64,000 nt of DNA, taken from the NCBI GenBank assembly GCA_002269645.1, contig NIVC01000974.1, positions 124,001-188,000 on the forward strand. The letters are read 5' to 3'. Origin of the DNA: Macrostomum lignano (lineage: Eukaryota). This document shows positions 7,359 through 63,682 of the stretch, in pieces; positions within the stretch are counted from its first letter, which is position 1; every line of letters starts with the position of its first letter. The notes under the pieces were generated by a model, which saw nothing but the letters and a program-made list of their open reading frames with translations, had not been told where the DNA came from and searched no databases. Made by a program: the position numbers and the translations under genes.

Positions 7359-15000
<7,642 letters not shown>

Positions 15001-35404: not shown

Positions 35405-37145
<1,741 letters not shown>

Positions 37146-37993
37146 AAATTTTAAAGGATCCAAGGGACATAGGGAGAGTCAGGGAGAGGCCAGAGTTTGC
37201 CAATACATGTTTTAGAGTCAGACAGACATTGCCTGACATTCTGTGAAGTAACCCAGCCAACAATATCAATGTTTGCTTCAAATCCTAATTTTACACTAAT
37301 GTGTTCATTTTATGTCTACCTCTATCCTACTAACTATTAACAAGTTTTTGTTTGTGTATGACCTTAGATTTCAGAATACATGCAAAAGTAGTTCCGGGGA
37401 TTGGAATTCCCCGGGTTCAAAATCCGCGGGTTTCAACAGCTTGTATACTATAAAAATGAGAAAAATTCGGAAATACATTATACTCGTAAGTAGTTATACT
37501 CCACTCTTCCCTTCAAACCTCAGACAATCTGCATTGTACTCCTGCTCGTACGAGCAACTTAATTATTTTACGGGGCGCGTACACACGAAGAATATTCGAA
37601 TAAAAAATGAAATAATAATCATCTGAGTTATTTAACAAGAGGCAAACGACTAGTAGGCCACAGACATGAATTCACAACTGGGCTAAGCCCCAAAGCCTTC
37701 ATTCAGTTTTCTTTCCAAGTCACTCCAGTGTACATTCAACTGGGGGGGGTTGGTCGGGGGTGGCGTATGTGCGTGGGGGCGGGAATTGGATGTACACAGA
37801 GAAAGAGAGACGAAAGGGAAGGGTTTGAGGGAGATACGTGAACCCTTAAATTATGCTGAGTAAGAACGGCGCTTTGCTTGCGAACCTCAGAAATATAGCT
37901 GCTGCTCGTGTATTTAATAGATTAGCTTTCCTCGCATTTAATTCAACTGGGCAAGATTTTGTGAAGCAGCCGGTTTGAGCTACACGCCTTAGC

Positions 37994-40504: not shown

Positions 40505-43500
40505 ATGGGGGCCCAAAGCACAAAACCAGAAAAACTTGACAGAAAAAATGCAGCACAAAATGCATTCACAAATTATGCATCAGGACAAAGCTTTTCTGAT
40601 ATAAGTCAAGGCAGTAGTTTTTTACGAAGCAATAGCATTAATGAAGGTAAGATAATCATTTATTGATTTGTCAATATAGGCCTAACCTATTGTTATCTTG
40701 AAAAAAAAATTTAAAATTTATATTCCTAATCATATTTTAATATAATTGTTTGAAATTTTCTTATTGTTATTGAGCATACTATAATAAAATTATGACAAAT
40801 TTTCAATTTGAAAATCCTGGGTTTTTTTGTCCATAACTTGGGTGCAATTTTGCACCCTGTGCTAGATTTCAGGGTGCAATTTTCAAGACCAAGATGCTAT
40901 TCGCATCGCACCTATTTGCACAAAAAATCTAGGCTGTCCACCATTCAGTATTCAATTTATCAGGTTCTGCTTACCAAAATTTAATCAACAGTTAACAATT
41001 CCTTAAATTACATTAATTAAGGATTCAAAAAATTACTGGCTAATTCTAAGAATACAAAGCTATGGACTTAAGATATCCATAACACTAAATTGTAAAATCT
41101 GCATCATATCCTTGCAAAAAATTCTGGTGCACTTTTCGCACTCTGAGTCAAATTTCAGGGTGCAATTTTTAAGACCAGGATACTATTCTCACCCATTTGC
41201 ACAAAAAACCCAGTGAAAATCTGCTTGCCTTTTATTTCTTATCCCTAAAGTTTTTAAATAAAGTATTAGAAAAAATATTAAATCTTGTTTTGACTCAAAG
41301 ACAAGGGTTAAAAATCTTCAAAAAGTTTGAAATTTCTTAATCTTAGTATGAGAAAAAAGTATAGATCTCATGTCATGATACCTTTAAGCTTAATAGATAT
41401 CATTGGGATATGCAATTGCAAATAAAAATATAGAGGAAAATATCTTAGCAACTTAACTTAGGTTATATTATTATATAAATATAATTAAAACCAAATAAAA
41501 TTTCAAATAGTTTTTTATTTTTAATAATATTTTTAAATGTTTTTTTAATTAAAACATTAATTATAATATAGTATTAGCCTATATAATTTATTCAAGTTAA
41601 TATTTTATTTATATTATGGTTGTAGTATTAGTCATTAAAAATGAAAAATCTTTTGTATTCTATTAATTGTTGTTACTATATAATGACCATTTATTAATAT
41701 ATTATTGCTCAAGATTAGAGGCAAATTCAAATGTCTCCCTTGTAGCTAGCAATTATGGCATCTGTTGTGGCCGTTGGCCAAATGAATAAAATCAATTCAC
41801 TTAAGGCAAAGGAGAAGTGGCTCTCAGCTATAGTGAGCTAGCCAATATATATTATGATGATAGGAGTGCGTAGATGTACATTGCTGCGTGTACATTACAT
41901 AATAGCATTGAGCATGCACATTCACAACATCATCCCCCCATGCAAAGAGGTGACAGATTATGGGTGGAATAAGCAGATGCATTAAAGCAAGCAATTTCAA
42001 AGAAACAGTTTTTGGTGCATGAGCAGTGAGTTAGTCAAGTCAGTCAATTGTGAGTCACAATGTTGCCGAACCATTGAGGGGGTTCACAAAGTCTCTCAGA
42101 GCAGCGCAGCAGTGGCGTTGGCAGTGGTGCCTCTGGTTGCCCACCGTCCGGCTGTTGCAGAGCCTCTGTGTCATTGGCCCCATCACCCCAGCCGTGGTGG
42201 TCATCAAGGATGCAGTGGCTGATGTGCCAGCGGCTGCCATTGGTCAGGGTGATTGTGTTGCCCTCGCGACTGATGACTGTCTGTGGCTCGGAGACGCTGC
42301 TGCTGAGCTTTCCGCGACTCGGCTGACAGATGTGGACGCGGCTCCCGACAGTCAGCACTGCGTCCTTCAGCGGCTGGTTCTGCTTGCGCATCCGGCGGCG
42401 GCTCTTGGCCTGCTGCTGTCACTCCGTGACGCTGCACTGCAGCTCCTGGTCCGTCGTTGACTCGGTGCTGGTTGAAGACGATAGAGAGGCAGGCGGAGCT
42501 TCCGTCCCAGCTCAGTTCAGCCGGCGACTTCTTGGTCAGCGCGTGCTCAGATAATCGATACGCTAGCAGGAGCTCCTGAACCGCCTGCTTCACTGGCACA
42601 CCGTCGGCGAGTAGTGCGCGCAGTGACGTCTTGATGAAGCCGTTGAACCTCTCGACTCCGCCATTCTGTTGTGGACAGTAGAACAGAGTGCGACGGTGCT
42701 TGATGCCGAGTGAGCTGAGGAAGTCCGTGAACTCGGTTGATACAAACTGAGGTCCATTGTCCGTGGTAATTTCGTCTGGAAGCCCAGCGGACGAACAGGC
42801 TGCGAAGGGCTTCGATACACGCAGCGGAAGTCACGGATGAGGATGCGATGATCTCAGGCCACTTGGAGTAGAGATCGTGGATGACGATGAAAAATCGATG
42901 GGACTGAGGCACATTGGCTTCCGGCAGCTCTCCAACGATATCGACTTGAAGCTGTCGCCATGGACCCGCTGGTAGCTCCGTCGTTGACCATGGGACCTTG
43001 ATCGGCTTGAACGCTTTCTCGGACAGGACGCAGGCACTGCAGTTCCGCACGAAGGCCTCCACGTTGCTGTCGATGCGCGGCCACCAAACCGTATCGCGGC
43101 ACCGCGCCTTGACCTTGGCGACGCCGAGATGTCCTTGATGCGCCTCTGCCAGCACAAGGTCGCGGAGGTCAGTCGAGATGACGGCTCGGCTGCCTCTCGC
43201 CAGGCAGCAACCATCGTTCCACAGGTAGAGTTCGTGTTGCACCTGGTGGAAGCCCTTCAGGTCGGCTGGAACTTTGGCTGGCCATCGGTTGATGAGGAAC
43301 CCGATGACTCGCTGCAGTTGGTTGTCGCTCTTGGTTGCATCGGCCAGTTGAGTGACTGAGATCGGCTCGGCGCTTCTGGCCAGCACCAGGTTGATGTCGG
43401 ACTCGCTCTGGTGCTGCTCATTGGACTCGTTGGCTGCGCTCTTGCCGTCGTAGCCGTAGCGAGACAGAAAGTCGGGCTGGACGTTGAGCTTGCCGGGGAC

Positions 43501-46500
43501 GTACTCGATGTCGAAGTCGTAGACGAAGAGTCGCTCGCACCAGCGCTGAAGTCGAAGAGGTCGTTGGCCGACTCCTCGAGGTGACAGCAGTGTCATCAGC
43601 GCTTGATGGTCGGTGAGAAGCTTGAACTTGCGACCGTACAGCAGCAGGTGCCAATGCTCGCAGCTCCAGACGCAGGCCAAGGCCTCCTTCTCTGACGCAG
43701 AGTAGCGGCGCTCAGTGTCGGATAGGGCTCGCGAGGCGAAGGCGACTGGCCGCAGCTGTCCGTGCTCGTCGACTTGGCTCAGGGTCGCGCCCAGGCCGAC
43801 GTCGCTGCTGTCGCAGGAGACGACGGTTTCGTGATCTTGGTCGAAGAACTTCAGGCACGGTGCTGATGAGATGAGCCGCTTCACCTCGCTGAAGGCTGCC
43901 TCGCATTTCACGTCCCAGTTCCATGGCGCGTCCTTCGCAGGAGCGCTGTCAGCGGCTCGGCGACGTGAGACAGGTTCTTGATGTAGAACTGGAAGAACTT
44001 TGCAAAGCCGAGGAACGAAGCCAACTCTGCCGTATTTGTGGGTGCCTTGAGTTTCGATACGGACTCGGTGTGCGACTGGAGAGGTTGAATTCCCGCTGCG
44101 CTGACGCGGTGTCCGACGAACTCGATCTCCGACGCCTTGAAGGTGCACTTCTTGAGGTTGACGGTTACTCGATGCTGCAGCAGCTTGTCCAGTACCTGAA
44201 GTACGCGAATTTCGTGCTCGGCTTCCGTAGCGGCGTGAATGGCGATGTCGTCTTGATAGTTAGTGAACGACGCCTCTGATGCCTTGGAGGATCTTGCCGA
44301 CGACCTTCTGGAAGGCCGCCGGAGCCGAGCTGATGCCGAACGGCATCCGTCTGAATTGGTAGAGGCCGGATTCGGTGTGGAAGCAGGTCAGGTTCTTGGC
44401 GTCATCATGCAGAGGCAGCTGTAGATACGACTGGTTGAGGTTGATCCTTGAGAAAAACTTTGAATTGTTGAATTCGGTCACCAGGTCGGCAAAGGTAGGC
44501 AGTGACATCGAGTCCGGGATGATCGCCTTGTTGACGCTTTGCAGATCAACGCAGAGGCGCAGCTTCCCATCGGCCTTGCGGGCACAGGTGACGTTGGACT
44601 GCCAGTCGGGGATGTCGTAGCCATAGCCATAGTTTTAACAAAAAGTCTAGGAAACAAAATATTTTGAATCAAGAAGATAACCTAGTGCTTAAACAACTGC
44701 AAATAAAAAAATAAAATAAAACAAACGCTCGATTGCTTTTGTAAGATTATATTTAATCCTTTTTACAAAGAGTAACAATACTTAATCACTACTGAAATTA
44801 CTAATACTAATGCTAAACTTTTTTACATTGATAAAAGTTAGAGTTTGCTAGTGTTTTATTGTACTTATTAGGTATAACCTATCTAAATATACTAAATCTC
44901 TAAGGTTTGTATATGCTTGAATGCTTGTCCATAACGCTCTAGTAAGTTTCTAAGTCTATAATACAGTTTACCAAAGTATCTTTGTTTTACTGTACCTGTT
45001 TCTAATATTTTTTTAATTAATACTCGTAACTATGTCTACAGGAATCTACCGAATGTGACAACAACTACCATATTCCCATAGTCATAGCTGTGAGAGCAGC
45101 TATTTACCATAGACGTATCCATACAAGCGTAGTTGCTGTAGGCACCTGTTTTACCATACATGTATTTGCCATAAGATCCTGTAGCCATAGCTACAGTGGA
45201 ACACTAGGCTGATGTATTTTATGGTGGCTGGTGCCCTTCTTGTTTATATTATGGCATCCCTCATCTAGATACATAAATCGTCTACATATTTTTTTGTCCC
45301 TTGTGAATTGGCCATCCCCAAAGGGGGCACAAGATTGTTAATAATACTTGCCTAAATTGCCATGTGAGGTAGAAAGTGAAGTTCAGTTCCTGTTTAAGTG
45401 TAGTTGGAACTTTATAGTGCTCCCTGTGATATATAGGAACCGGAAATCTCTGATAAAGTATAGAATTTTCAGAACCTTAATGCAGAAAAATAGAATTAGT
45501 ATAATTTCCTCAATAATAATTAATACCATTGATTTCGGCCAATCACTGCTATTAATAGTCTGTTTTTTATTTTCACTGTACAGACGGCTCATCTGGTCAG
45601 CGTCCACCAACCTGGCAGTCGTTTCTTGGCTCGGAGCCACAACCAACTGGTCGCAATCTGCCTCTACAACAACAGCAGCAACAGCTACAACAGCAGCAAC
45701 AGCTACAACAACAGCAACAGCAGCAGTCTCTGGTAGTAGCCGTCTTAGACTTTGTGGCCACTCACGAGGGCCAGCTGTCAATCCGTCGGGGCCAGCAGCT
45801 CCGGCTGACTGCGCTGGGCGGGCCCGGCGATTGGTCAGAAGTTGAAAGTCCAGTTAGCCGTAAGCGAGGCTGGGTACCAACTAATTATGTAGTGCAGCTG
45901 AGTAATCTGCACCTGTTCACCTGGTACCATGGACAGGTATGTTATTAGTTAGTTAATAAAATCAGAATAATCGTCACCGTTATAGCACGTAGCAATAAAA
46001 GGGACCATTCACCAACAGTATCGATATGAAAGCCCATTCACCAACAGTATCGATATGAAAGCCCATTCACCAACAGTATCGATAATGTCAAAGCCCATTC
46101 ACCAACAGTATCGATATGAAAGCCCATTCACCAACAGTATCGATAATGTCAAAGCCCATTCACCAACAGTATCGATATGAAAGCCCATTCACCAACAGTA
46201 TCGATATGAAAGCCCATTCACCAACAGTATCGATATGAAAGCCCATTCACCAACAGTATCGATATGAAAGCCCATTCACCAACAGTATCGATATGAAAGT
46301 CCATTCACCAACAGTATCGATAATGTCAAAGCCCATTCACCAACAGTATCGATAATGTCAAAGCCCATTCACCAACAGTATCGATAATGTCAAAGCCCAT
46401 TTACCAACAGTATCGATAATGTCAAAGCCCATTTTCCAACAGTATCGATAATGTCAAAGCCCATTCACCAACAGTATCGATAATGTCAAAGCCCATTCAC

Positions 46501-49500
46501 CAACAGTATCGATAATGTCAAAGCCCATTTTCCAACAGTATCGATAATGTCAAAGCCCATTCACCAACAGTATCGATAATGTCAAAGTCCATTCACCAAC
46601 AGTATCGATAATGTCAAAGCCCATTCACCAACAGTATCGATAATGTCAAAGCCCATTCACCAACAGTATCGATAATGTCAAAGCCCATTTTCCAACAGTA
46701 TCGATAATGTCAAAGCCCATTCACCAACAGTATCGATAATGTCAAAGTCCATTCACCAACAGTATCGATAATGTCAAAGCCCATTTTCCAACAGTATCGA
46801 TAATGTCAAAGCCCATTTTCCAACAGTATCGATAATGTCAAAGCCCATTCACCAACAGTATCGATAATGTCAAAGCCCATTTTCCAACAGTATCGATAAT
46901 GTCAAAGCCCATTCACCAACAGTATCGATAATGTCAAAGCCCATTTTCCAACAGTATCGATAATGTCAAAGCCCATTCACCAACAGTATCGATAATGTCA
47001 AAGCCCATTTTCCAACAGTATCGATAATGTCAAAGCCCATTCACCAACAGTATCGATAATGTCAAAGCCCATTCACCAACAGTATCGATATGAAAGCCCA
47101 TTCACCAACAGTATCGATATGAAAGCCCATTCACCAACAGTATCGATAATGTCAAAGCCCATTCACCAACAGTATCGATATGAAAGCCCATTCACCAACA
47201 GTATCGATAATGTCAAAGCCCATTCACCAACAGTATCGATATGAAAGCCCATTCACCAACAGTATCGATATGAAAGCCCATTCACCAACAGTATCGATAT
47301 GAAAGCCCATTCACCAACAGTATCGATATGAAAGCCCATTCACCAACAGTATCGATAATGTCAAAGCCCATTCACCAACAGTATCGATATGAAAGCCCAT
47401 TCACCAACAGTATCGATATGAAAGCCCATTCACCAACAGTATCGATATGAAAGCCCATTCACCAACAGTATCGATAATGTCAAAGCCCATTTTCCAACAG
47501 TATCGATAATGTCAAAGCCCATTCACCAACAGTATCGATAATGTCAAAGCCCATTTTCCAACAGTATCGATAATGTCAAAGCCCATTCACCAACAGTATC
47601 GATAATGTCAAAGTCCATTCACCAACAGTATCGATAATGTCAAAGCCCATTCACCAACAGTATCGATAATGTCAAAGCCCATTCACCAACAGTATCGATA
47701 ATGTCAAAGCCCATTCACCAACAGTATCGATAATGTCAAAGCCCATTCACCAACAGTATCGATAATGTCAAAGTCCATTCACCAACAGTATCGATAATGT
47801 CAAAGCCCATTTTCCAACAGTATCGATAATGTCAAAGCCCATTTTCCAACAGTATCGATAATGTCAAAGCCCATTCACCAACAGTATCGATAATGTCAAA
47901 GCCCATTTTCCAACAGTATCGATAATGTCAAAGCCCATTCACCAACAGTATCGATAATGTCAAAGCCCATTTTCCAACAGTATCGATAATGTCAAAGCCC
48001 ATTCACCAACAGTATCGATAATGTCAAAGCCCATTTTCCAACAGTATCGATAATGTCAAAGCCCATTCACCAACAGTATCGATAATGTCAAAGCCCATTC
48101 ACCAACAGTATCGATAATGTCAAAGCCCATTTTCCAACAGTATCGATAATGTCAAAGCCCATTCGCCAACAGTATCGATAATGTCAAAGCCCATTCCAAC
48201 AGTATCGATAATGTCAAAGCCCATTCACCAACAGTATCGATAATGTCAAAGCCCATTCACCAACAGTATCGATAATGTCAAAGCTAATTCACCAACAGTA
48301 ATAAAGTACAATCACTATCAATTTCAAAACAAATTTATTAACTCAGTGAACTTCTAAGAGCTTCTAGCCGCATTCACTGGAAATGTTACCCTCCCCTCCC
48401 CCCAGGTGAGCAGGCGCACCGCAGAGTACCTGCTCAGCTCGGGCATCAACGGCAGCTTCCTGGTGCGCGACAGCGAGTCCCAGCCCGGCCAGCTGAGCGT
48501 CAGCGTCCGCTGCAACGGGCGCGTATTTCACTATCGGATCAACCGCAACTCTGAGGGCGGCTATTTTGTTACGGCCGAGCATGCGTTCCCCAGCCTGTGC
48601 CAGTTGGTGCAGCACCACGCTGTACAAGCCGACGGCATCGTCTGCCTGCTGCTGTACCCGGCGCCGAAGCGATGGCGAGCCAATGCTTTGCAGGTAGAAT
48701 TAAATTGTCCATCTATCATGATGCAAGCCCGAATCCTGGGCCCTCAGATCCTCAGACCCTCTGACATTGAGCTCTCAAGCCTATGATATCAGCATCATAT
48801 TTTGAGCATTGGAATCTCTAGAATTCCCCTTTGCCCCCCTCCCCCTCAATCTTAGCGACTCCCCCTTAATCCTTGATATCTCAGCATTTCACACTGATCA
48901 ATAATGGCATCTCAGCTATCCCGTGTTTAGCCATGGTCTTCTATTGGTCTTTGTCCTCTGGCAGTCCAGATTTTTTCCTCAGGGAACAAGACTTCCCCAT
49001 TCATTATCGCTAGATGGGGGGGGGGCAGGTGACCCCTTGACCTCCTCTGGATGGCAGTAAAGCAATAACCTCAAACGTCAGGGTTCACATCTGCTAGTTA
49101 AAACCTATTAGAAAAGACGAAGCCAGAGTTTGCCTAGGTATTTTTGGGTGGAAATTTCCCAATCACAGGGAGGGAGTTCACGCTCAATAAACCAGACCCC
49201 CCCCCAACCCTCTGCTTTGCCAGCCTGGCAGCGAAGACACCTGGGAGGTGGAGCGCACGGAGCTGGTGATGCAGCAGAAGCTGGGCGCTGGCCAATACGG
49301 CGACGTCTATCAGGCCGTGTGGAAACGGTGCGGCAACCTCACTGTGGCGGTGAAGACGGTCAAGGTAAGCCGACTGACTAGGCAGTCAAGTTTGCGTCAC
49401 TTCAGGTGTTTTATGCTTTTCAAGGGCTAACAAAACAGGCTTTGGTGCAATTCAACAAGTTGAAGAGCTATTGCTGCTAAAGAAGATTTTCTGTTCTGTG

Positions 49501-52500
49501 CTGTTTTTCTTTTAGTCTCGTACAGAAGTATGAAAATGTGCTTATAATTAATGGATCTAAGCTCGCCGCCACAATATTGTGAGGCAAAATAGACCCAGCC
49601 CAGTTCTGGTCAAATTGTGCATTGAATTTCAGCTGCTTTGTATAGAAACTTGATATGCCGCGTTAGGCCTGTGAATTCTAATTACGAGCTAACATCGCTT
49701 TTTGCAATTAATTTTCCACTCGTATATAAAACCAGAAGATCTTCTTGGCAAGTCCTAAAGTGTACTGTGTCTCCCCGTTTGTGTAAATGAATGATGAGTT
49801 ACCGCGTTTCATCGCTAATCTTGGCATTTTGGATTTGTTTAGGTTGAACCTCTGCCCTCGGAGAGCAGACAACGTGTCAGTCAATCAAGTCTTAAAAAAG
49901 AAAGGCTCTTTGTGGTCTTTCTAAGTTTACAGCTTATTGTCTGTAAACTGATCAAAGCCTCTCAGAAAAGCTTCTGCATCATTGAATTGTCTCAGTATAG
50001 CTTGGCCATAGACAAAATTCCGCTCATTTTTTCATGAAGTCCTCTGCTTACAGGGTGTGGAAAACTGATTGCGCTTTCTAGCCATTTTGGTTTGGGCCAT
50101 AGACTACTTTGACTAGGCGAAGCCACATGGTCTCCGTGTCAACTTTTGAAAGCCCCAAGTTAAAAATTGACTGCAAAAAGCGATATATAATTGTTAAACT
50201 GGACTTTTTTTACTAGAAATGTCTACTGCAATGTTATTCAAAAACCTCGTAAAAGTTAGAATATTTATTAACATCTATGTTTTCACTCCATCAAGTTTCA
50301 GGAGGACATGTCAACTAAAGTGAATGATTTTCTAGCCGAAGCTCACATTATGAAGCATCTGAGGCATCCTAATCTGCTGCAAATATTGGGTAAGTTAGCT
50401 TTAGATGCCCAGCTGTCTGTCTATCGTAGCAGTTAAACCCAGCTGACTGTCTATGGTAGCAGTTAAACCCATCTGACTGTCTGTCTATGGTAGCAGTTAA
50501 ACCCAGCTGACTGTCTATGGTAGCAGTTAAACCCAGCTGACTGTCTGTCTATGGTAGCAGTTCAGCCCAGCTGACTGTCTGTCTATGGTAGCAGTTAAAC
50601 CCAGCTGACTGTCTGTCTATGGTAGCAGTTAAACCCAGCTGACTGTCTGTCTATGGTAGCAGTTAAACCCAGCTGACTGTCTGTCTATGGTAGCAGTTAA
50701 ACCCAGCTGACTGTCTATGGTAGCAGTTAAACCCAGCTGACTGTCTGTCTATGGTAGCAGTTAAACCCAGCTGACTGTCTATGGTAGCAGTTCAGCCCAG
50801 CTGACTGTCTATGGTAGCAGTTAAACCCAGCTGACTGTCTGTCTATGGTAGCAGTTCAGCCCAGCTGACTGTCTGTCTATGGTAGCAGTTAAACCCAGCT
50901 GACTGTCTGTCTATGGTAGCAGTTCAGCCCAGCTGACTGTCTGTCTATGGTAGCAGTTAAACCCAGCTGACTGTCTGTCTATGGTAGCAGTTAAACCCAG
51001 CTGACTGTCTGTCTATGGTAGCAGTTAAACCCAGCTGACTGTCTGTCTATGGTAGCAGTTAAACCCAGCTGACTGTCTATGGTAGCAGTTAAACCCAGCT
51101 GACTGTCTATGGTAGCAGTTCAGCCCAGCTGACTGTCTGTGGTGGCAGTTCAGCCCAGCTGACTGTCTATGGTAGCAGTTCAGCCCAGCTGACTGTCTAT
51201 GGTAGCAGTTCAGCCCAGCTGACTGTCTGTCTATGGTAGCAGTTAAACCCAGCTGACTGTCTATGGTAGCAGTTCAGCCCAGCTGACTGTCTGTGGTGGC
51301 AGTTCCGCCTAGCCAATGACAGAGCTCCGTTCCCATGCAATCCACAGGCGTGTGCAGCCGCGAGCCGCCATGCTACATCATCGCCGAGTTCATGCCGCAC
51401 GGCAGCCTGCTAGACTTTCTCCGCAGCCAACGCAGCCAGCTGGCCCCATACGCCCTGCTGTACATGGCCACCCAGATCGCCGGCGGCATGTCCTACATGG
51501 AGTCCGAGTCCTACGTGCACAGAGACCTGGCCGCCAGGAACTGCCTAGTTGGCCAGGACTGCATTGTGAAGGTGGCGGACTTCGGCCTGACTCGCCGGCT
51601 GCAGGGTGCCAGTCCGTACGTGGCCAAGCGGGGCGCGAAGTTTCCCATTAAATGGACAGCGCCGGAGGGCCTGGCTTATAATCAGTTCACCAGCCGGTCG
51701 GATGTCTGGTCGTTTGGCGTGCTACTGTGGGAGATTGCCACCTTCGGTTGCTCTCCTTATCCCAGAGTGGAGCTCACTGACGTCTACCGGCTGCTGGAGA
51801 GTGGACACCGGATGCAGCGGCCCGCTGACTGTCCAGACAGCGTCTACCAGTTGATGCTGGCCTGCTGGCAGTGGCAGCCGGAGCAGCGGCCAGCGTTTGC
51901 TGAGCTGCACACCCGGCTGAAGGCCATCTGCGACAGCGCTGGAGCTGGTAAGGCTGCGGCTGGGGTTAGGGTTATGGACAGTGTCTGGAGCAGGTCTAAT
52001 AATAATAATTCTTCTGCGACATAGTGTCGCATTCAGCTCTGGGGCGATTCCCAAGCGCGTCAATACTGTACGCAGGCACCACACTTTCTGTGTCTTAGGG
52101 CTCCGGTCCTCATGCCCCTCCCCACCAGGGACTGGGTATAAATATATAATAAACACCAACAAGTATGTCCATGGTTATTTTGCCTTTCACTCCACCCAGA
52201 ACCGGACGATTCCGCTGTCAGACAGCAGCAGTACCAGCAGCAGTCGCAGGTGCACGCCAACGGTGGCGGAGTGCTTGGCGCTGCCAGCTCCGTTGACTGC
52301 GAGTTCTTTCCTCCGCCGCCGCCTCCGGTGCAGCAGCCTCAGCAGCAACTTCAATTTCGGCACCCGTCAGGCATCCTTGCCAGTGCGTAGCAGCTCGCCT
52401 ATTGAATTGTTTGAAGTCTGGCAAGCCTCAGTTGAGTTAAAAAACCCACACGTCCATCCCGCAGCTCCGCCGCCTGCCTCCTCGCCGCTGCCGCCACCGT

Positions 52501-52895: not shown

Positions 52896-53959
52896 CCTCT
52901 TGATAAATATGACAATACATGCAGATCGAAGCGAAGTTAACTCCTAGAATCCTAGTCAAGTCGGTAACTAAATTCCAGGTGATCTGTCCGCCGGAAAAAA
53001 TAGTATTCATCACATAATTAGCTGCCAACTCCGTACACGGTGCAGTCTGTGCAGTTCGACTCTCCCTGGTACCCGAAGTGTTTCCTTGTTCGAGCTTTGC
53101 AGCAAGCCGGCCATTTCAATCTGTACAGTCATGACTCGGCAGCGTACTGCAGCAGTGTAAATTAAATCTCAAATGGCGTCTTGTTATTGTTTACAGTTCT
53201 GCTTTTCACATAAATACTCGGTTTGCATGATCTTAATAATAATCCTAGTTTGTGTTCGAATTCAATTAGCGCTGAATATGCCCTGCCGTTCTGTTCTTTC
53301 TATATGCTTATTCGAGTATTTAATGTTTGTATCTATAGTTATATATGCTTTATGCAAAGTAGCCGAGATGAGGTCTGTCTCTAGCTAATTAACCCGTGGA
53401 TCAACGGCCGTTTTTTTGACGATTTCCGGCAATTTGTAATACCAATTGCACTTTTAAACTCCCGCTAATTCAATGCAGATTTTGTAAGTAAAGTTCTGCG
53501 TATGCAATCTACACCGCCGCAAGGTGTGAAAATATACTGGCATCATTTATTTATCATATTACTACTGATACATACTACTGACTATCATTGTAAAACTAAG
53601 GATTATCACTGTAAAACTACAAGTTTGTAAGGATTAACAGTGTGACTGTCTAGTTTTTTTTAACAGAACAAAAAACAAAACTTGCTTTCAGTTTTTTAAA
53701 GATGTTTTTATTAGTGTTGAGCTTGCCAATGCTACAGATAACAGACATAACAAGGCCCGTATAAAACTTTGTAATATAACTCATAAGAAGACTAAAAAAT
53801 TGATTGAGAACGAAAATGCAAAACACGCGAACTGCAACAGCAAGAAGCAAGGAAGCTTCAGAAGACATGAAAGATAATTAAATGCAAACATTACTAATGT
53901 CATCACCAACACAAACCAAACCAAAATAAAATCAACATCATTCATTCAGCATCGCCTCT

Positions 53960-56900
53960 TCACTTGAACCGGCCCCAGCCGCCCATCAATTGGCCTGGCG
54001 GCAAAGTAGGCAGCTGTGGCAGTGTTGAGACTGCACCAGATGATAGTGGAGGCTGCTGCTGCGGCTGCAAGTGAGCGAAAGATGAGCAGTGTCTTTCGAC
54101 CAGCGCCTATCACCTGGCCAACCATTTTGATAAGACAGCGGAGATCTTACCGTCGTGGCAGACTGTTGCTGCCCTGCGAGCAGCGCACGAAAGCGAGGCG
54201 GAGCAAGAGGCCGCCGCAGAGGCGAGAAAAACGGCACCGCCTCTGGGCTGAGCACAGTCGAGTCTGAAATGGAGCAACACAACGAATCCATAGAGAATGG
54301 TTCACTCAATTAAGGCTGCCCATATTGGGCTCACACAAAGCGTTGGAACTGAGAGGGGGCGAGGTGGCGGGAGGAGGCATTGGAACTCACTCTGCTGAGT
54401 CTGACTGGGCAAATCAGACTCGCTGCTGCTGCTGCTGCTGGCATCGGAGCCCTGCTCAGGTTCTTCTTCCAAGCAGAACAGCTGCAGCTGCACTGAGCAG
54501 CGAGTCAGCCTGGCCCTGGCTGAGCTGAGCAGCCCGCTGCAGGCCGGCTGCCGCACCGAGGCCAAATCGGCTCGGACGCCAGCCAGGGCGCCGGCCGCGA
54601 GGGAGACCCTCTGGCGGATGCTGAGTCTGGACTTCGTCAACGGAACAGCGCAGCGGGAGACGCGCCCGCTCAAACCTGCCCATTGTCAATCAATCAACAA
54701 AGAACAGAAATGGTGAAACTGAAACAGTTGCACGGTCAAAATAATAAAAAACTGTAAACAGAATTTTTTTAACGCTTACGAGATTGCGATGACTCGTGCG
54801 GAGAAAAATCCTTTTTTAAATTGCAACAACGATTAGAAACTGGGGAAAAGGTTTCAAGAGACTGAGAACAAATCTCACTAAAAACCATTAGTGATCAATG
54901 TGTCACAATTGTCCTCAATGACTTTTGTCCTCACGACTCCTCCCCGTTGCCTCAAATCAATATGATCTTCATCGTTAAATTATGGATGATTAACTCTTCC
55001 TTCTTGGAAGCTGCGCACCAGTCGTTCTCTCTATTCTGCAGAGATCCACGCGCCTTAGACAAAAATGTCAACAATGTGTCGCCAAAATCAAAGTCACTTT
55101 TGCCAAAGTCTAGATTGAAATGGTATACAGCACAGGTGAGTTACTAAGCTGGTTAATGGTGATGGCTTTGTCGTGCCGATCGGGTTCCCTTCGAATTCCC
55201 TCGCTTCTTTGTGCCGGTACGGCCTGTGACTCCGGTGCATCTGGTCTCTGACCATTGCCTCGTCTGCAATTACCTCGCACGAGTCATCGCAGTCTCGGTA
55301 AATAAACAAACAAAATTAACGGGATTAAACGATAGCGCTGTCGTGAACTTAAACAGGCCCAACTTACCGCCAGAGCCAACAATTTGGCAAACGGCTGCAC
55401 CGTCTGTATGTTTAGGCTGCTCGTCGGCAACTCGGCCGCTCTCTGCAGAGTCGGGAGAGGAGTTTCAATAAATCATGGCACTCTACACAATGCAGTGAGC
55501 AATTGACATAAAAAGGAAAATCAAAGCCGATTATATTCACCATGCGAACCCGTTGCGCCCTGAACGCGGGCCTGATCACCAGCTTGGCTTGCGGCAGGGA
55601 TCCCAGCATGCGATTCCTTTTGCTCAGTTGGTTTCACAGCAAACTTAAAGACTGACTGCTTAGCTTCAAGAAATTTGTCAACCTGCTGCTCATAACCATG
55701 CTGCTCATAGTCTTGTTGATGCTCATTATCGGCCTGCTGCTCATGGTCCTGTTGATGCTCATCATCGGCCTGCTGCTCATAAGCTTGCTGCTCATCATCG
55801 GCCTGCTGCTCCTCATCGGCCTGCTGCTCATCATCGACCTGCTGCTCCTCATCGGCCTGCTGCTCCTCATCGGCCTGCTGCTCATCATCGGCCTGCTGCT
55901 CCTCATCGGCCTGCGGCTCATAATCCTGCCACTCATTATCAGCCTGATGCTCATAGCCCTGCTGCTCATAATATTGACGCTCATAGTCCTCCTGCTGCTC
56001 ATAATCTTGACGCTCATAGTCCTGCTGCTCATAATCTTGACGCTCATAGTCCTGCTGCTCATAATTTTGACGCTTATAGTCCTGCTGCTCATAATCTTGA
56101 CACTCATAATTCTGCCACTCATAATTCTGCCGCTGCTCATCATCAGCTTCCTGCCCATCATCAGCCTGCGGCTCATCATCAGCCTGACGCTCATAGTCCT
56201 GCTGCTCATAATCTTGACGCTCATAGTCCTGCTGCTCATAATCTTGACGCTCATAGTCCTGCTGCTCATAATCTTGACGCTCATAGTCCTGCTGCTCATA
56301 ATCTTGACGCTCATAGTCCTGCTGCTCATAATCTTGGTTATGATCATATTCCTGCAGGTTCTCGTCGAGGCCATCGCCAGCTTCGCTGCCGGGCGTCATG
56401 GCGCGGCTGCTGCCCGCTTCCGCATCGGTGCCGACCTCTTCGATGTCGGAGTGGCCGCCGGTGCGCACGCTGGCCTCGGGCTCGCATTGAGCGGCTACGG
56501 GACCGGGGAATGAAAAACATTGTCCGACTTTGCAAAGGTAGGCAGAGTTTCAATATAAATCCCCACTGAGGCCTACAGGCCCAATACAAAACTCATTATT
56601 TACCCTTCTTGCCGTCTGGCTTGCAGAGCCTGTCCACCTTGCCCAGCGGTGCGAAAGCCTTCTGCTTGAAGTCAATCTGAAGTTTCAGCACGAAGCGGTA
56701 TTATACATTGTCAAGCGCTTTTAACTACCAGCAATCACCTGTACAACAGTAATAAATCACTCACCTGAATCGGCAGCAGTCCGAGCGACTGTCTGCTGAA
56801 AAATTCCAAGAAAGAGCCCATCTCTCCATCCAGATACACAGAGTACGGCGCGTGCGGCTGAAGAGCAAAGTTGCAGACCCACCAATCAATTTAATAACTT

Positions 56901-59900
56901 GCAGATTAAATATGACAACAAAGGAACCAACCTGATCAGCTGGGGGCTCAAGATCCACAGTCAGCTTGAGCAGCACGTCCTGAGTGATTCGGTGGAACTC
57001 TTTCACGGCGGCCTCATCAAACTGGGCGGCTCCGCCATTCGGAATCAGAAAGGCCAGTCGGCACAGAATTGCGTGGGCGGGGACTCCCTCCGCGAACCTC
57101 CGGTGCATGCAGCGCAGGTCGGACACGCCAACAGTCAGCAGCTCTCCGTAGTCGACATCCTCCACCAGCCGTCGGTCAGCGGAGCCGTCGGCAGCATGAC
57201 TGACGATTCTCACCCGCCGACAGCCCTGCTTGGTGACGGCCACGCACAGCTGATCAGGCCTGGTGTACACCTCCGGCATTGGCGGGTGCTCAGCCGAGTC
57301 CAGCTGCTCCATCAGCTTGTCCAGACGGTTCGACACCTCGCCGTGTGGAATCACGAAGAAGCGGCCCGGGCCCGAGTTTGAGGCCAGCGGCACCAGCACG
57401 TTGTACTGCTGCTGCAGCAGGTAGTGCGCGCTCACTTCGGTGCCAACAGCGGGCTGCCGCGGCCGCCGCATGCGCTCGACGGGCAGCCGGTAGCCGGGAG
57501 GCACGCAGTTCTCGGGAAACGGCGGCGCCTTCGGCAGGTTGGGCAGCCGCGTGCCGTACACGGCGATGCGGAGATCCGGGTCAATGGGATTTTTCATCAG
57601 CACTATGCCCGGGATTTGGCGCAGCAGATCCAACAGATTGTTGCAGCCCATGCTAGAGAAGCTGGGCAGGTCGCACTTAAATCTGTCGGAATGAGGTCAG
57701 AAAATGATTATCCAATCGGGGCTCTGTCCAATTTAAGCTAAATAATGCAGCGTTGGCGTTGGCTGTGAATAACGGTCAAGCTTGCGCAATTTCAGATACA
57801 AACGTGTTATGTTGGAAGTTACGAGCTACGTACTTTGTAGCGCTTTTTCATATCGTAGTAATGTGTTAGTAGTAACAAATTTCATATCGTAGGCAGGTTA
57901 GTAGTAACAAATTATCGCAATATAATAAAAGTGACGCGTTGTTTGTGTGTGTTATGTGTGTTTCATAACATCTCTGAAACTACTGGGCCAATTTTTATGT
58001 GACAAGTTTTTTAAAACTATAAAACTTAAGTTATTTACTGGCTGTGTGACCCGCTAACTTTGGCACCAAGCAGGTCGCCGAGGTGTGAAGAGTTGTAAAC
58101 AGCCGGTCCCGCACCCTGGCCTGCCTGTCGGCTAGGTCATGGGGCTGGCCTAAGGAGAGCATCATGTGCACCTTCAAAGCCCTACTACACGGCGTGGCAA
58201 CCCTAGCTTTCTGACTCCAGCGTGCTCAAAACCAGGTCCTGCGCATTGTTACGTCAATTGCGCACTACGCCGGTGGAAGCCCTGCATCTGGAAGCCGGTA
58301 TCTGCACGGCGGACACGATGCGCAAGCAGCTGTCTCACCGCGTACGAGAAGGCGCTCTGCTTGCCTGCCGCGCACCCTTGCCGCTGTACCGCGGAGGGTC
58401 AGGTCCCGCACCGCACGGCCAGAAGTAGCTGGCGTCACCGCGCCGAGCTGCTCCTGACAAATATGCCGGGAGACTTTTTCCCCGCGAGCCGCTGTCGGCC
58501 GTTCCACCGTGCCCGTGGAGGCGCTCCACCGCTGCTCTCAGCGCGTCTACAGCCCTCCACCCGCTTCACGCTGCCCCTACCGACGCGGATTCTCAGGCTG
58601 ACGCCGCGATGCGAGCCAGGTGGCACGCGGAGAATACCATTAGACAAGCGGCGGCTGACCTGGTCCTGTCCTGAGCGGTCTGTCTGATCACCAGCGGCGA
58701 CCCCGCCAAACCGACCGTCATCGATACGATCACCGCGCGGTGCTGCATTGACCTGCAGCTTCAGACGATTCAGGAGTGGCCACTCTATGGACCTGGTGGA
58801 GTACAGGAAGCGTATGGGTAGACAAGAGGAGGGCTGGTGTACGAGGTGCGGTTTGGAGGCCGAGACGCTGGAGCACGTCATGGAGTGCCCCGTCACGCGC
58901 AGCCTTAGGGAGGAGCTTTTTCGCAATCATACCGTCTCTCCGAGGCGACCCGGCCCGAGGCAGCCCCTCCAGAACCGCCATTAACGATAGAGAAAAAGCG
59001 AAAGCGTTTTGCGGTCTCTACGCCAGCATCTCACGGAACCCACGCGACCGCGACGACTGCACCATCAACTACCAGGCCTACAGAGCTATGCAAGCCACCT
59101 GCTGTAACAGGAACGATCGAAAGGGGCTCTGCTCAGCCTTCTCCGCAGCTGAGCTTAAAAACGTACTGACCAGCCTTAAGTCCGTCAAGAGCCCCAGCGA
59201 CGATCAGGTCACGAACGAGATGCTGAAGTACCTTGGGAGCCCCACGGAAAAAGGCTGCTCGACTTGGTGAATAAATCGTGGCTGACCGGGAAATGCCCGC
59301 ACCAATTGCGATGCGCCACTATCATTTCCATACCTAAGCGCAGCAAACGGCGGAGGAACTCGGCAGTTACAGACCGGTCGCCCTCACCAGTTGTATTGCA
59401 AAGGTCGCAGAACGACTGGTCTACCACCGGCTCAGCCACTTCCTTGAGTCCACCGGTAAGAGCAGCGGAGTGCAAGCCGGGTTCCGAAAGGGCAGATCAT
59501 GCGAGGAGCAGATCGCCCGCATCTCCCAATGAATCTTCGACGGCTTCGAAAGATCCCCAGCACTGCGCTCCATCCTCGGACACCTGGACTTCTCCCGCGC
59601 CTACGACAGGGTCTGGAAGAGAGCCCTCCTTCTGAAAATTAAAGAGGTCGGCACCCCACCCTGTGTCCTAAGATGGATCAACAGCTTTCTGGCGTACATA
59701 AGAGCCAAGGTCCGGGTAGGCACCAGCAACAGCAAGGAATGCACTTTCCGCGAGGGGCTCCCACAAGGCAGCGTCCTGGCCCCGCTCCTATGGCTTGTCT
59801 ACATCAACGCCCTCCCGGACACTATCCACGCCGCTTCACCGGACACGAGTGTGAGCCTGTACGCCGACGACAGCGCGATACTCGCCACCAAGAAAAGTCT

Positions 59901-62900
59901 GCACGAATGCAAGAACAGCCTGCAACCGGCTCTGGACGTCATCGTCGGGTGGTGCAAGAGATGGAAGGTCGTGCTCAGCCCCGAGAAATGCAGCTACAGC
60001 ACCTTCACGCTAACCCCGGCCGAGAACAGAGGCAAAACACGACTCGACCTCAACATCGACGGAGCCCCACTGCGGTTCGAGGCGACCCCGACCTTCCTAG
60101 GCGTCAAATTCGATTACCACCTCGGCTTTGGAGAGCACGCCAAGGACATCAGACGCAGAATGGTAGCTAGACGCCGACCGATCCAGATGCTCGCAGACAG
60201 ACAAACGGGCGCCGACCAAAGAACACTGTGCGCAGCCTACATCGCAACCTGCCGCTCCATTGCGGACTACGGCAGTGCCATCTGGCTAACGAGCGCAGCC
60301 CCAAGCAACCGGGCCCTCGTTGAGCGCCAACAGAACGCGTGCGCACGCTTAATCACTGGCTGCGTAATGCCCTCCCGGACGGACAAACTGCTGGCCGTCG
60401 CCAACCTGCCGCTCCTCCATCACGTCGCCGCGGAAAGGGCTGTCAACCTCCGCGAGAGGATGGCCAGACTACCGGCCGATATTCCAGTGCACCAATCAGC
60501 AACCGCAACCCAGCGACCAAGACTCAAAAACCGGACCTACGAAGCCGCACGGAACACCCCGACCGACGGCGGCCGGCGCCAAGAACGCATTCCGGACGCG
60601 CTCTCGGACGCCAACCACCCGTTCCACGCCTGCTGGCGGCGCATCGCACAAGAACTGGACTGCAACGCCACGCTTAAGGCCCACCCAAGAGCACCAGCGG
60701 CAACCGGCCCAGCACCGTGGACCATCGACAACAGCCTTGAAGTCCGCTTCGACACGTCGGCCACCAAAGAAACATCACGTCAAATGTCAGCAGAACTCCG
60801 CGCAGCCTACGCTGAACCAACCGTGTCCCGTCTCACGGACCACGTCATCTGGACCGACGGTTCGGTCGAGGACGGCTTCAGAAGCGGCGGAGGAGCAGCA
60901 TGAGTAAGAGATCTGCATGAGTACACCAGCTACAAAGTTCAGGGAAAGAAAGATCATGGTGAAGAATGGCTACCAGAACGGGGCTTACGTGAGGGATGCC
61001 CCACGTCTCCGGTCCTGTTCAATATATTCCACCAAGCATGCATTAGACTATTAGAAGACAGAACCAGAGCAGCCGAAAGGAATGCCACACCACGCGGTAT
61101 CGAATGGCAATGGCTCCCGGGTCCCTCAGTGCCACCTCAGAGGATCAACCAATTTAACTCCGAAATGAGAGGACACCAGTTTCGGACATCCCTCTTCGCA
61201 GATGACACAACCATCATGGGTAAACGGAACGAATTGGAACAAGGTCTTGAAATAACTAAAAATGGATGAGCGAATTTGAAGAAAACACCTATGACGACAA
61301 GCAAGAGGAGATGGTGATGGGGACGACAGGAGGGAAAATAAGAATGCTGGGCTCATGGCCAAGGACGCCAGGAAGACACAAAAAACAAAATCCAACGAGC
61401 AGCACACAGCTGGAGCATTGGAATGCGCGCGGCAGGCCTGATAGGGGCAAGGATCAGTGTATTGCAAGATAACATGAGAGACAGAGACGAGAGGAGAGTG
61501 CGAGCCAGGACCCAGTGGAAACTGAGGACCATCCGAGAAAAGCCAGAGCCGAGATGGACTGAGAACAGAACACATAAAGAAGGCGAGAGAAGGGAGGCGA
61601 CGTTGGAGGAGAGTAAGGAGGAGGGAGATGAAAAACTTCGAAAAGAACAAAAAATCACTAAGACATGTTTAAAAATGAAGGGTCATGCTGCTAACAGAAC
61701 TGAATAAAGACAGCCAAGGGGTTCGAACCTTCCAGCACGGAAACAAAGAAGCAACAGTAGCATACTCGTACACCAACAAAGTGGGAATCTTGCTAGACGA
61801 GGAAAGCTTATCCCTATGGAGAATGTCCGGTCGCAAGATTACATACAGCGGAGCGAACGATCGCGATCGAGATAGGCAATTTCGAACTTATTGCCATCTA
61901 CCAACCGGTCAAAGAATCCGAGGACTACAACATAAAAAACCAAATTATCCGGGACGCAATCACCAGGATGATTTAATCACCCGAAACAGTTTGGGCAAAC
62001 TCGTTCTTCAGTAAGAAGCGGATGGGCACCTGGAAGAAACCGCATAGCAAACGCTGGTGGGAGGTGGGAGGAAGTGTCCGTTTTCTGGTCAATGAGGCCA
62101 TCCGCAAACAGTTGTCGCGATCCCGCAATTCTATTCTGGGATCCAGCCAACAAACGGGAAGCCAAGGCCAGGGAGAAAATGTCTTAAGGTCTCCGAGTCA
62201 GCTTGAAACAGACTTGGCAGCCAGTCAAGTAACGGCAGACCGACTCGCCAGGACAATGCGGACCATTCTCTCCGCAAGCCATTTGATACTACGAGCAATC
62301 AATTTAATACCCTGTGGGACCTGATCTCTGGCCTATCCTCAAATTTTACGTTGTCGAATAATTTTGAATTAGTAAAAGTAAATTTGTAAAAATGTTTCTT
62401 CACATCCTTACTACATTCGGAGCAACAACGGATGTTGCAGCGATGAGAATGGTTTCTATTCGACAATAAATGGTAGACTTACGATGACTGCAGCCAATCT
62501 ATGAACTTTTCGATACGTTTCTTCTTATCAAATGTTGCGTCATTTCGCTAATTTACACTCCTTTCCTATTTTACCTACGTCATCTCTCTGAAATGACTCT
62601 GGGGCGACGCAAGTGACTCAGGGACGCTTCCAGGCCTACGTGCCGTTTTAATCGACTTTACTCATTCCTTAGTTACAGAAACAATTGGATTTCATAAATC
62701 GCCAGTCAGGCCTTCGTGTCCGTAGCCAAAGGACCTACCACCCAACAAGACAGTTCAGCACATTCACTGAAGACGACCTGCTCACGAAGTCGTTGACGGG
62801 CCTGCGTGGCGGAGAAGTCGCTGGACGCGGTACAATACTTTTTAATATGGATTGTGAAGGAAAATTTACCACTTTCCCAGGTGCAGATTATGCCTTCCCG

Positions 62901-63682
62901 GGAACAGCAATTGAAGACATCAGTTAAAGGCATGTATTTTACTAAAGGTAAGGATCTCGCGTCAAAAAGTTGAACACCCTGTGTGAGTGCGTGCCTGTAT
63001 GTATATGTGCGTGCTCAGGGGTCAGCGGACTGGGCTGCGAGCCGACTATCGCCTTGACTTACGGCAAAAATAGCAAAGCAGAGAGTTGCAATAGAAATCT
63101 GCACTCACTCCTCCCGGTACTTCTCGGGCAGCAGGAGAACTGGCAGGCCGGGATAAACGTAGGCGATGCACAGCAGCCGCTTTTTCACCTCAGCAGGCAA
63201 ACTCAGCTGCCGCTTTGACGCCGATGCGCTGCACTTTGCCGACTCGACCATGGCGTTGCTGGCGACCCGCAGGCACCGCTTCGAGTCCAAGACGAGCCGA
63301 CCGGACAGCGCCAGGTTGACGGCCACCTCCTCGGCCGAGCTGCGGTCGAACAGGTCCAGCGGAAACGGCTGCTTGTAGAAGATCTCGAAGGATTGGGCCA
63401 AGTGGGCTGGACGCAGAGGCATCGACAGGCGCTCGGCGGCCACGCGCACCAGCTCGACAATCGACTCGACGGCCTCCGCCTGCTTCGCCGAGCGTTCGGC
63501 ATCGCGCTGCCCTTGCAGCTGCAGCTGGCGCTGACGCTCGCGCTCCTCCTCGCGCTTCTGTCTTCGTTGACGTTCGCGCTCCTCGTAGCGCTTGCGCTCG
63601 CGCTGCAGCTGACGCTCAAGCTCCTCCTCGAGCTCCTCGCGCTTCATCTGGCGTTCCTTCTCGCTTATGATTATTTCGTTTG
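53960..63682 (-). CDS. LOTUS (OST-HTH)-LOTUS-extended Tudor protein, TDRD5/TDRD7-like, 5'-partial, >=1007 aa in window; exons 63682-63109, 57682-56932, 56857-56765, 56676-56604, 56494-55541, 55442-55368, 54675-54391, 54263-54151, 54064-53960
   Basis: LOTUS-like VESIVELVRV..HLAQSFEIFYKQPFPLDLFDRSSAEEV, and EVKKRLLCIAYVYPGLPVLLLPEKYREE|FKCDLPSFSSMGCNNLLDLLRQIPGIV joined across a phase-2 intron. Extended Tudor GRFFVIP..QLCVA..RVRIV..DVDYGE..HAILCRLA. All eight introns GT-AG and phase-compatible. The 3' exon chain is hand-predicted only. Confidence 0.8.
54776..55301. mobile_element. MITE-like element with ~28-bp imperfect terminal inverted repeats, in an intron of the LOTUS-Tudor gene
   Basis: TTACGAGATTGCGATGACTCGTGCG at ~54776-54800 versus CGCACGAGTCATCGCAGTCTCGGTAA at ~55276-55301 (15-bp perfect core); TA at both outer edges. 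Confidence 0.6.
55690..56340 (-). repeat. Coding tandem repeat: 15-bp units (YEQQD/YERQD) and 18-bp units (ADEEQQ/ADDEQQ)
   Basis: Lies inside the phase-compatible 954-bp exon of the LOTUS-Tudor gene; unit lengths preserve the frame. Confidence 0.85.
58060..58935 (+). mobile_element. LINE ORF2 C-terminal fragment (post-RT region plus CCHC knuckle)
   Basis: RTLACLSARSWGW, LRTTPVEALHLEAG and CTRCGLEAETLEHVMECP in shifting frames. Confidence 0.75.
58936..60900 (+). mobile_element. Decayed LINE (I/R1/LOA-like) RT with the start of RNase H
   Basis: KSPSDDQVTNEMLK, SYRPVALTSCIAKV, QAGFRKGRSC, LDFSRAYDRVW, GLPQGSVLAPLLW, YADDSA, PTFLGVKFD, then IWTDGS (RNase H), where it breaks off. Contains frameshifts and a stop. 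Confidence 0.9.
60901..62325 (+). mobile_element. Third, unrelated LINE RT fragment
   Basis: GLREGCPTSPVLFNIF and SLFADDTTIMG at ~60980-61220, followed by decayed downstream ORF2-like frames. Confidence 0.75.

Follow-up and report, generated by a model that had tools for sequence, protein, structure and literature searches.

How TDRD5-family scaffolds select and hold their RNA clients is an open question, and a gene of the flatworm Macrostomum lignano raises it in a concrete form: could such a scaffold dock directly onto poly(A)-binding protein (PABP)? Most of this TDRD5-like gene lies on the minus strand of the 64-kb stretch of contig NIVC01000974.1 analysed here (positions 124,001 to 188,000; hereafter the window), and the penultimate exon predicted for it encodes a short peptide resembling PAM2, the motif class bound by the MLLE domain of PABP. 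Comparison of the gene with its tandem paralogue indicates that the motif is real and conserved and is a PAM2-class candidate, a known motif class in a new context and so far in one flatworm lineage. That this candidate peptide docks onto an MLLE domain such as that of PABP we hold to be possible, at a little short of even confidence.

The peptide, TVLSPEAVPFFSP (T1 V2 L3 S4 P5 E6 A7 V8 P9 F10 F11 S12 P13; positions 54220-54258 of the window, minus strand), is encoded near the start of exon 6 (54151-54263, minus strand), which begins NSTVLSPEAVPFFSP... and translates as (N)STVLSPEAVPFFSPLRRPLAPPRFRALLAGQQQSATT. The 20-mer covering the motif is QQNSTVLSPEAVPFFSPLRR. Exon 6 is delimited by the acceptor ccatttcag at 54264/54263 and the donor ACG-GTAAGA at 54151/54150. 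A predicted terminal exon 7 (53960-54064, minus strand) follows, placed by splice signals and composition only; it opens after the acceptor cacttgcag at 54065/54064, encodes PQQQPPLSSGAVSTLPQLPTLPPGQLMGGWGRFK and then TGA, and ends in GGWGRFK plus the stop at 53983-53960, with the GW dipeptide at 53980-53975. Introns 5 and 6 measure 127 and 86 nt. Exons 6 and 7 have a G+C content of 66% and 61%, the introns one of 50-52%; it is down to 34% in the 3′ untranslated region, where an AATAAA at 53706-53711 (minus strand), about 250 nt past the stop, is the likely poly(A) signal. The first-pass annotation of this DNA had drawn attention to the penultimate-exon peptide and to the GGWGRFK end, and we reproduced both its translation and its exon chain, with canonical splice signals throughout. 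The exon 6/7 splice and the C-terminus of the protein, for which the motif-bearing sequence ...QTQQNSTVLSPEAVPFF results, are predicted from these signals.

A paralogue supplies the evidence on whether exon 6 is translated. Two GenBank contigs show, in tandem order, a copy A (837 aa), URO-D and a copy B, the last annotated as a protein of 1116 aa on NIVC01002274.1 and of 1082 aa on NIVC01002050.1. The start of copy B on NIVC01002274.1 matches the window over 1860 nt at 98.5% identity, so the window gene is copy B. Its Tudor exon is 99% identical to residues 182-431 of PAA61288.1 (P0001; BOX15_Mlig020006g1, hypothetical protein), a copy A model and the sole close HMMER match; the transcript identifier Mlig020006 was not mentioned in the literature texts or supplements that we searched. 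The two copies form a mosaic (window 63556-54374 against locus L001 10095-14192). Exons 1-5, repeat included, are 95-99% identical, and no alignment is possible for the N-terminus, for the 1-1.5 kb that separate the repeat from exon 5, or for anything past 54374, the DNA similarity stopping 17 nt beyond the exon 5 donor. This pattern suggests that the duplication is old and that gene conversion probably homogenised its 5′ and central parts later, and it fits tails that retained their old divergence except for one island under protein-level selection.

That island is the motif. Copy A keeps the exon 5 donor, CAGCAGA-GTGAGT, and an acceptor, tttgcag, lies 219 nt downstream of it in the same phase (L001 14396/14397). 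Splicing between the two opens a P/Q-rich frame of 196 codons that starts KQSVSAALDPNAVSFFAPTVPPRF, i.e. KQSVSAALDPNAVSFFAPTVPPRFAAKQ..., and lies downstream of the annotated stop (L001 14178-14985; L002 14131-14940). It contains a counterpart of the window peptide, AALDPNAVSFFAPTVPPRF (A1 A2 L3 D4 P5 N6 A7 V8 S9 F10 F11 A12 P13). The exon 5/6 junction, which the first-pass annotation had predicted by hand, is thus matched in the paralogue, where the donor and the motif recur and the acceptor is in phase. The alignment of exon 6 with the copy A tail spans 21 residues, of which the two copies share 12 (S, L, P, A, V, F, F, P, P, P, R, F); nine of these twelve use different codons, and the nucleotide identity is 57%. 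The local alignment scores 58, compared with a shuffle mean of 30 (SD 5; p=0.0002), and the conservation is limited to the pair of coding frames, the other eight frame pairs scoring at most 26. Since the conservation follows the coding frame only and is accompanied by codon changes, exon 6 appears to be translated and the motif selected in both copies; we consider it very probable that this exon encodes a translated, selected linear motif. In a tblastn search of the paralogue loci, exons 6 and 7 were too short a query to bring out the motif, which was found by reading the sequence. The deposited paralogue models miss the conserved 196-codon tail altogether.

Those same models also weigh against the spliced tail. 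P0001 and P0108, which are StringTie/TACO transcript assemblies with TransDecoder open reading frames (ORFs), continue past the exon 5 donor (QTQQSEFQCL) to a stop inside the intron, at L001 14327, which an AATAAA overlaps; at least one isoform is without the motif. The C-terminus that PAA61288.1 and PAA59344.1 have in deposited form, ...FCFLLFVGLCSLFLFLLFTCIH, is either that of an intronic-polyadenylation isoform or an artefact. One explanation built on these facts is that the exon 5-6-7 chain is minor, and that the mRNA mostly extends no further than exon 5, the intron being retained or carrying the polyadenylation site as in the copy A models, or uses another 3′ structure, which would make the motif a relic or the property of a minor isoform. 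In addition to the transcript-based read-through, this explanation can point to exon 7, which is without comparative support (exon 7 and the copy A tail show no significant similarity; shuffle p=0.69), and to the annotated copy B products, which differ in length from our model of 1045 aa. The model is 37-72 aa short of them, and for this reason the stretch from 55580 to 54675 is provisional, whereas the frame of exon 5 and the exon 5/6 junction are unaffected; matching the model to the copy B proteins by length is in any case unreliable because the length of the internal repeat varies. We nevertheless regard an early end as unlikely. Synonymous change at most of the conserved residues, confined to the coding frame, implies translation and selection in both copies; donor and in-phase acceptors are present in both, with the long open frame beyond them in copy A; and a search for a poly(A) signal in intron 5 of the window found none, unlike in the copy A intron. 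A separate, trans-spliced downstream gene made up of exons 6 and 7 was also considered and rejected, as the motif has no in-frame ATG before it and both copies keep the phase across the junction.

With the translated tail as the preferred reading, the next question is what the peptide resembles. PAM2 has been defined as Phi3-(N/S)4-(P/V)5-x-A7-x-x-F10-x-P12, in which position 3 is hydrophobic and usually Leu, position 4 Asn or more rarely Ser, position 5 may also be Thr, position 9 prefers Glu and position 12 is ‘usually’ Pro, and in which A7 and F10 (Trp in the PAM2w variant) are invariant, F10 being the chief determinant (Kozlov and Gehring 2010, PMC2854688). The core given in the LARP4B paper, LNxxAxx[F/W], is in agreement. 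The window peptide satisfies positions 3, 4, 5, 7 and 10, and that of copy A positions 3, 5, 7 and 10. The two together read [VA]-L-[SD]-P-[EN]-A-V-[PS]-F-F-[SA]-P, followed by a conserved PxxPPRF (54190-54210, minus strand; PLAPPRF in the window and PTVPPRF in copy A). The four positions that contact MLLE in PAM2 (3, 5, 7 and 10) are identical in the paralogues, where positions 4, 6, 9 and 12 vary and 8, 11 and 13 are kept; the codons of Ala7 (GCG/GCT) and Phe10 (TTT/TTC) differ between the copies. In the 128,000 codons of a six-frame scan of the window, L[NSD][PVT].A..F turns up once, and it turns up once more in each paralogue locus, always at the motif site; a looser core, [LFP].[PVT].A..F, gives 7 matches in the window scan. 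Among 30 Tudor-family representatives (about 36,000 aa), which have no LOTUS domain and hence do not amount to an orthologue test, no match was found to a PAM2-type pattern or to the paralogue consensus; a looser scan of the same proteins with L[NSD][PIVTAFL].A..[FYW] returned one match, LDAEALGW, without Pro/Val/Thr at position 5 or Phe at position 10.

Several observations speak against assignment to PAM2. Pro12 is absent, position 12 being Ser in the window peptide and Ala in that of copy A, and the proline stands at position 13 instead; the first-pass annotation had remarked on a proline one position late, which is indeed the case, and the same displacement occurs in the bona fide PAM2-2 of Tob1. 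The likeness that it had proposed therefore stands at positions 3, 4, 5, 7 and 10 and fails at position 12. Copy A has Asp4, which should be unfavourable where Asn or Ser normally contacts Glu587 of MLLE (PMC2854688). A search with Pfam PF07145 at E≤10 found no match in the full model, the tails or the isolated peptides, although the HMMER filters may hide weak, short matches of this kind. An expression of the ELM LIG_PAM2_1 type fails at position 12, and a PDB phmmer search with either peptide retrieved no PAM2 chain. The conservation is known from two M. lignano paralogues. Finally, V8, F11, P13 and the PPRF string, none of which is a PAM2 determinant, are conserved equally well, which could mean that the motif is adapted to a different partner.

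It is this last point from which the most serious competing explanation arises, namely that the conserved, translated motif docks a partner other than MLLE and that its likeness to PAM2 is coincidental. Candidates for such a partner include a domain of the SH3 or WW type reading PxxPPRF, with the FF pair as an auxiliary contact, a granule or piRNA-pathway partner, and the protein’s own Tudor domain. The conserved non-determinants, the failure of the Pfam, ELM-type and PDB searches and the unfavourable Asp4 of copy A all favour it, and PLAPPR and PTVPPR fit PxxPxR, which we take to be the class II SH3 pattern. On the other side, the PAM2-defining residues L3, P5, A7 and F10 are invariant between the paralogues; the solvent-exposed position 6 and position 9, a matter of preference only, vary as they do in PAM2, though position 8, likewise solvent-exposed, is conserved; so specific a pattern is found once per 128,000 codons; and tails of this kind often contain Pro-rich, SH3-like strings, which say little. 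We judge a non-MLLE partner to be quite possible but not probable.

If the peptide is instead a PAM2, the mechanism that we propose is as follows. The disordered tail of the TDRD5-like scaffold would carry a docking peptide for the MLLE domain of cytoplasmic PABP or of UBR5/HYD, which is to our knowledge the only MLLE protein besides PABP. Leu3 and Pro5 would occupy the pocket between MLLE helices alpha2 and alpha3, Ala7 would pack against the MLLE methionine, and Phe10 would occupy the alpha3/alpha5 pocket. Polyadenylated RNAs coated with PABP would in this way be tethered to the LOTUS-Tudor scaffold, whose N-terminal LOTUS domain would recruit a Vasa-type helicase, by homology with TDRD5/Tejas. 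The peptide would be expected to compete with the PAM2 proteins Paip, eRF3, Tob, PAN3 and GW182. MLLE binding, Vasa binding and germline expression are what we infer for this protein. That a TDRD5-family granule scaffold directly docks PABP through a selected PAM2-class peptide, and so bridges a Vasa-type helicase, held by its eLOTUS domain, and poly(A) RNA, we put forward tentatively, as a proposal that could well prove mistaken.

The predicted C-terminus suggests a further possibility, a module resembling GW182 in which effectors would be recruited both by the PAM2-like peptide and by the terminal GW, the latter serving as a tryptophan motif for Argonaute or CCR4-NOT. The GGWG sequence does lie in a Gly-rich, disordered context, and the 196-residue tail of copy A contains five tryptophans (NWP, VWP, NWS, YWW). 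However, the whole tail of the window protein has a single tryptophan, at least one GW or WG turns up in 26-38% of protein shuffles, which is chance level, and exon 7 as a whole is not significantly similar to the tail of copy A. GW182-type binding requires several W motifs. Such a module is in our view very improbable. The terminal GW is noise; it is not conserved in copy A, whose tail ends ...MDYWWQQ, and it would have no part in the mechanism proposed above. The GW182-like logic advanced in the first-pass annotation accordingly loses its GW element, and only the PAM2-like peptide is left to carry it.

The bridge from a Vasa-type helicase to poly(A) RNA, tentative as it is, would be of some consequence. 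A PAM2-class peptide on a LOTUS-Tudor protein, if bound by MLLE, would join Vasa-containing granules to poly(A) tails. For TDRD5, TDRD7, Tejas and Tapas, no such physical connection of nuage-type granules to the machinery acting on poly(A) tails has been described. The combination had seemed unfamiliar for TDRD5/7 at first pass, and our literature search likewise found no link of TDRD5, TDRD7 or Tejas to PAM2 or PABP. Should another partner be bound, the peptide would still be a conserved handle on a new partner of the scaffold. Because M. lignano can be made transgenic, functional study is practical.

The gene that encodes this tail can be modelled over most of its length. Seven exons in the window chain in frame with GT-AG at every intron, in a model built from splice sites and frame (63647/63682-63109, 57682-56932, 56857-56765, 56676-56604, 54675-54391, 54263-54151 and 54064-53960, all on the minus strand). 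The first coding exon lies off the window, beyond 64000, and encodes the N-terminal LOTUS domain (MEQVAVNLRL...VRLVLTN; L002 20661-20889); its phase fits the acceptor at 63682, and for the domain search of the full protein it was taken from the near-identical contig (locus L002). Exon 1 of copy B (63109-63682, minus strand; acceptor ccatgcag at 63683/63682, donor GA-GTGAGT at 63109/63108) is 98.7% identical to its copy A equivalent and encodes a coiled-coil E/R/Q stretch, a second LOTUS-like domain and the N-terminal half of a third. A first exon at 58398-58252 was dropped in its favour, as 63682-63109 is in the correct phase, agrees with the paralogue and supplies the rest of the LOTUS domain. 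Intron 1 (57683-63108, minus strand) spans 5.4 kb, compared with about 175 nt in copy A (L001/L002 comparison). This intron holds a non-LTR (long terminal repeat) retrotransposon reverse-transcriptase ORF on the plus strand (59533-61266; Pfam RVT_1, E=2.7e-22), and the off-window intron 0 of copy B (L002 20889-22738) is filled with a minisatellite of about 46 nt per unit, ...agtgactaatctggtgacttccagtgacgcatctagtggcacattc....

Exon 2 (56932-57682, minus strand) encodes the C-terminal half of a LOTUS domain and the Tudor core (Pfam TUDOR, E=2e-9). Exon 3 (56765-56857, minus strand), with GT-AG splice sites and the frame kept, completes the extended Tudor (SN-like) fold, and its peptide is identical in PAA61288.1. 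Exon 4 (56604-56676, minus strand) encodes IDFKQKAFAPLGKVDRLCKPDGKK and has a donor of phase 1. Between exons 4 and 5 lies an exon made of acidic, Tyr-rich QDYE(Q/R) units of 15/30 nt (55580-56494, minus strand; donor at 55580 predicted). The core of this repeat, delimited with a tandem repeat finder at 56336-55680 on the minus strand, is open in all frames, and the exon is phase 1-1, so its inclusion gives 1045 aa and its skipping 740 aa with the frame unchanged. The repeat is coding in the transcript-based copy A models (P0001, P0108 and P0109), with a copy number that differs between the copies, and might act as a multivalent or condensate-forming module. Exon 5 (54391-54675, minus strand) encodes ...KSRLSIRQRVSLAAGALAG...SSSSSSESDLPSQTQQ and ends at the donor CAGCAGA-GTGAGT (54391/54390). 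The annotated copy A protein, with 90% amino-acid identity, fixes its reading frame, and the DNA of the region is 95% identical to copy A over 54639-54374. Just before the exon 5/6 junction, at 54415-54392, both copies have ESDLP(S/C)QTQQ, which bears a faint likeness to the ‘TQT’ site for dynein light chain LC8.

From its sequence, the architecture of the protein is that of TDRD5, with three LOTUS-like domains and one extended Tudor domain. Pfam TUDOR matches the full model in a single stretch (E=9.5e-9), and extended Tudor structures of TDRKH match residues 279-414 (E=2e-6). With the off-window exon added, Pfam OST-HTH/LOTUS matches two stretches (E=2.2e-7; 31.1 bits against a cut-off of 23.8), the best being residues 23-61 of that exon, whereas the window by itself scores E=0.12. 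These matches bear out the first-pass description of a LOTUS-Tudor protein. Behind the N-terminal LOTUS domain comes a long E/R/K stretch predicted to be helical, and binding of Vasa has been found to need an extended LOTUS domain (eLOTUS) with an alpha5 extension (Jeske et al., PMC5458760). Of the three LOTUS-like domains, this off-window one is the sole candidate for a Vasa-binding eLOTUS. The earlier suggestion of a LOTUS domain that binds Vasa is thus upheld as to the presence of LOTUS-like domains, but the only one that would qualify lies outside the window.

In the Tudor core (57260-57130), the aromatic-cage positions are mostly non-aromatic, with CRRVRI corresponding to WYRARV of TDRKH and LVEDVDYGE to YFVDFGD. 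The domain is probably not a methyl-arginine reader, as reported for Tejas. A full HMMER search against 1.8 billion representatives returned only the M. lignano copies and generic multi-Tudor proteins, and no TDRD5 orthologue surfaced; a LOTUS domain was absent from all 30 of the Tudor-family representatives checked.

The remainder of the window is occupied by unrelated genes and repeats. An Abl/Src-like cytoplasmic tyrosine kinase gene (48358-52021, plus strand; SH2 E=3e-22, kinase E=4e-77) converges on the 3′ end of the TDRD5-like gene. The gene for a major vault protein lies at 23412-26729 on the plus strand, with Vault repeats and the MVP shoulder domain (E down to 4.6e-50), and a minisatellite reading ‘HNKL(L/P/A)S’ is found at about 25643-26470. 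This gene and the other neighbours suit an animal that is not an insect; a Drosophila or mosquito source, with the LOTUS-Tudor gene as Tejas or Tdrd5l, was rejected on the vault protein gene and on the 99% identity of the Tudor exon to M. lignano proteins. On the minus strand are a single-exon universal stress protein ORF (30399-30893; Usp E=4e-25), a C2-domain exon (14533-15012), an LTR-retrotransposon pol with RNase H and integrase (42207-44387), and a remnant of a Tc1/mariner-type DDE_3 transposase (33641-34150). Long minisatellites and a (GA)n tract occur at 3580-4259, 6682-8240, 13514-14459, 17482-18668, 35368-37284 and 11800-12100. They give rise, on either strand and in several frames, to ORFs of 150-390 codons, and the length of an ORF by itself tells nothing in this genome.

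How the M. lignano protein relates to known systems can be considered from the side of the scaffold and from that of the peptide. The comparison with Tejas and Tapas made at first pass holds for the architecture, which is of the TDRD5 type, but the host is a flatworm, and these proteins are analogies, not orthologues. With TDRD5 and Tejas the protein shares an N-terminal LOTUS domain, extra LOTUS-like domains and a single extended Tudor domain with an apparently degenerate cage; Tejas, which recruits Vasa in nuage, has likewise been reported to be without an intact aromatic cage. Tejas differs in that it ends at the Tudor domain and has no reported link to PABP, whereas the M. lignano protein has a long, repeat-bearing tail. 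In flies the family is divided into the transposon-silencing Tejas and the mRNA-repressing Tdrd5l. Drosophila Tdrd5l interacts genetically with the deadenylase twin/CCR4 and with Dcp1, no physical link being known, and the LOTUS protein MARF1 binds CCR4-NOT (PMC6168497). Both resemble the present case as TDRD5-family or LOTUS proteins acting on poly(A)-tail metabolism. They differ in that the links are genetic or run via CCR4-NOT, no PAM2/PABP contact is described, and Tdrd5l is reported to be without a LOTUS domain. GW182/TNRC6 offers a parallel in the placement of a PAM2-type peptide in the disordered effector tail of a granule scaffold, but it has many GW/W motifs and an atypical PAM2 (WPPEFHP), in contrast to the one chance-level W and the Leu-type core found here.

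On the side of the peptide, the PAM2 of Paip2 (SNLNPNAKEFVP, 1jgn_B) has the same core, Phi-x-P-x-A-x-x-F, with the same spacing as the window peptide; Paip2 and canonical PAM2 peptides have Pro12 and Glu9, and the window peptide has neither. The two PAM2 motifs of Tob1, known from the chains of PDB 5ci9/5ci8, differ from the window peptide at position 12, where they have Pro and, in PAM2-2, Phe and the M. lignano peptides Ser and Ala, and at position 9, which is Glu or Val in Tob1 and Pro or Ser here. The hosts differ as well, Tob1 being a BTG/Tob deadenylase adaptor with structurally characterised peptides and the present protein a LOTUS-Tudor scaffold whose peptide is known from sequence. 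PAM2-1 (SFNPEAQVFMP, IKNSFNPEAQVFMP) nevertheless has Glu6 in common with the window peptide, and PAM2-2 (ALSPNAKEFIFP, KTSALSPNAKEFIFPNMQGQ) has its Pro at 13, not 12, just as the window peptide does. In both Tob1 motifs L/F3, S/N4, P5, A7 and F10 agree with the window peptide, and in both cases the peptides reside in disordered regions of proteins that regulate RNA.

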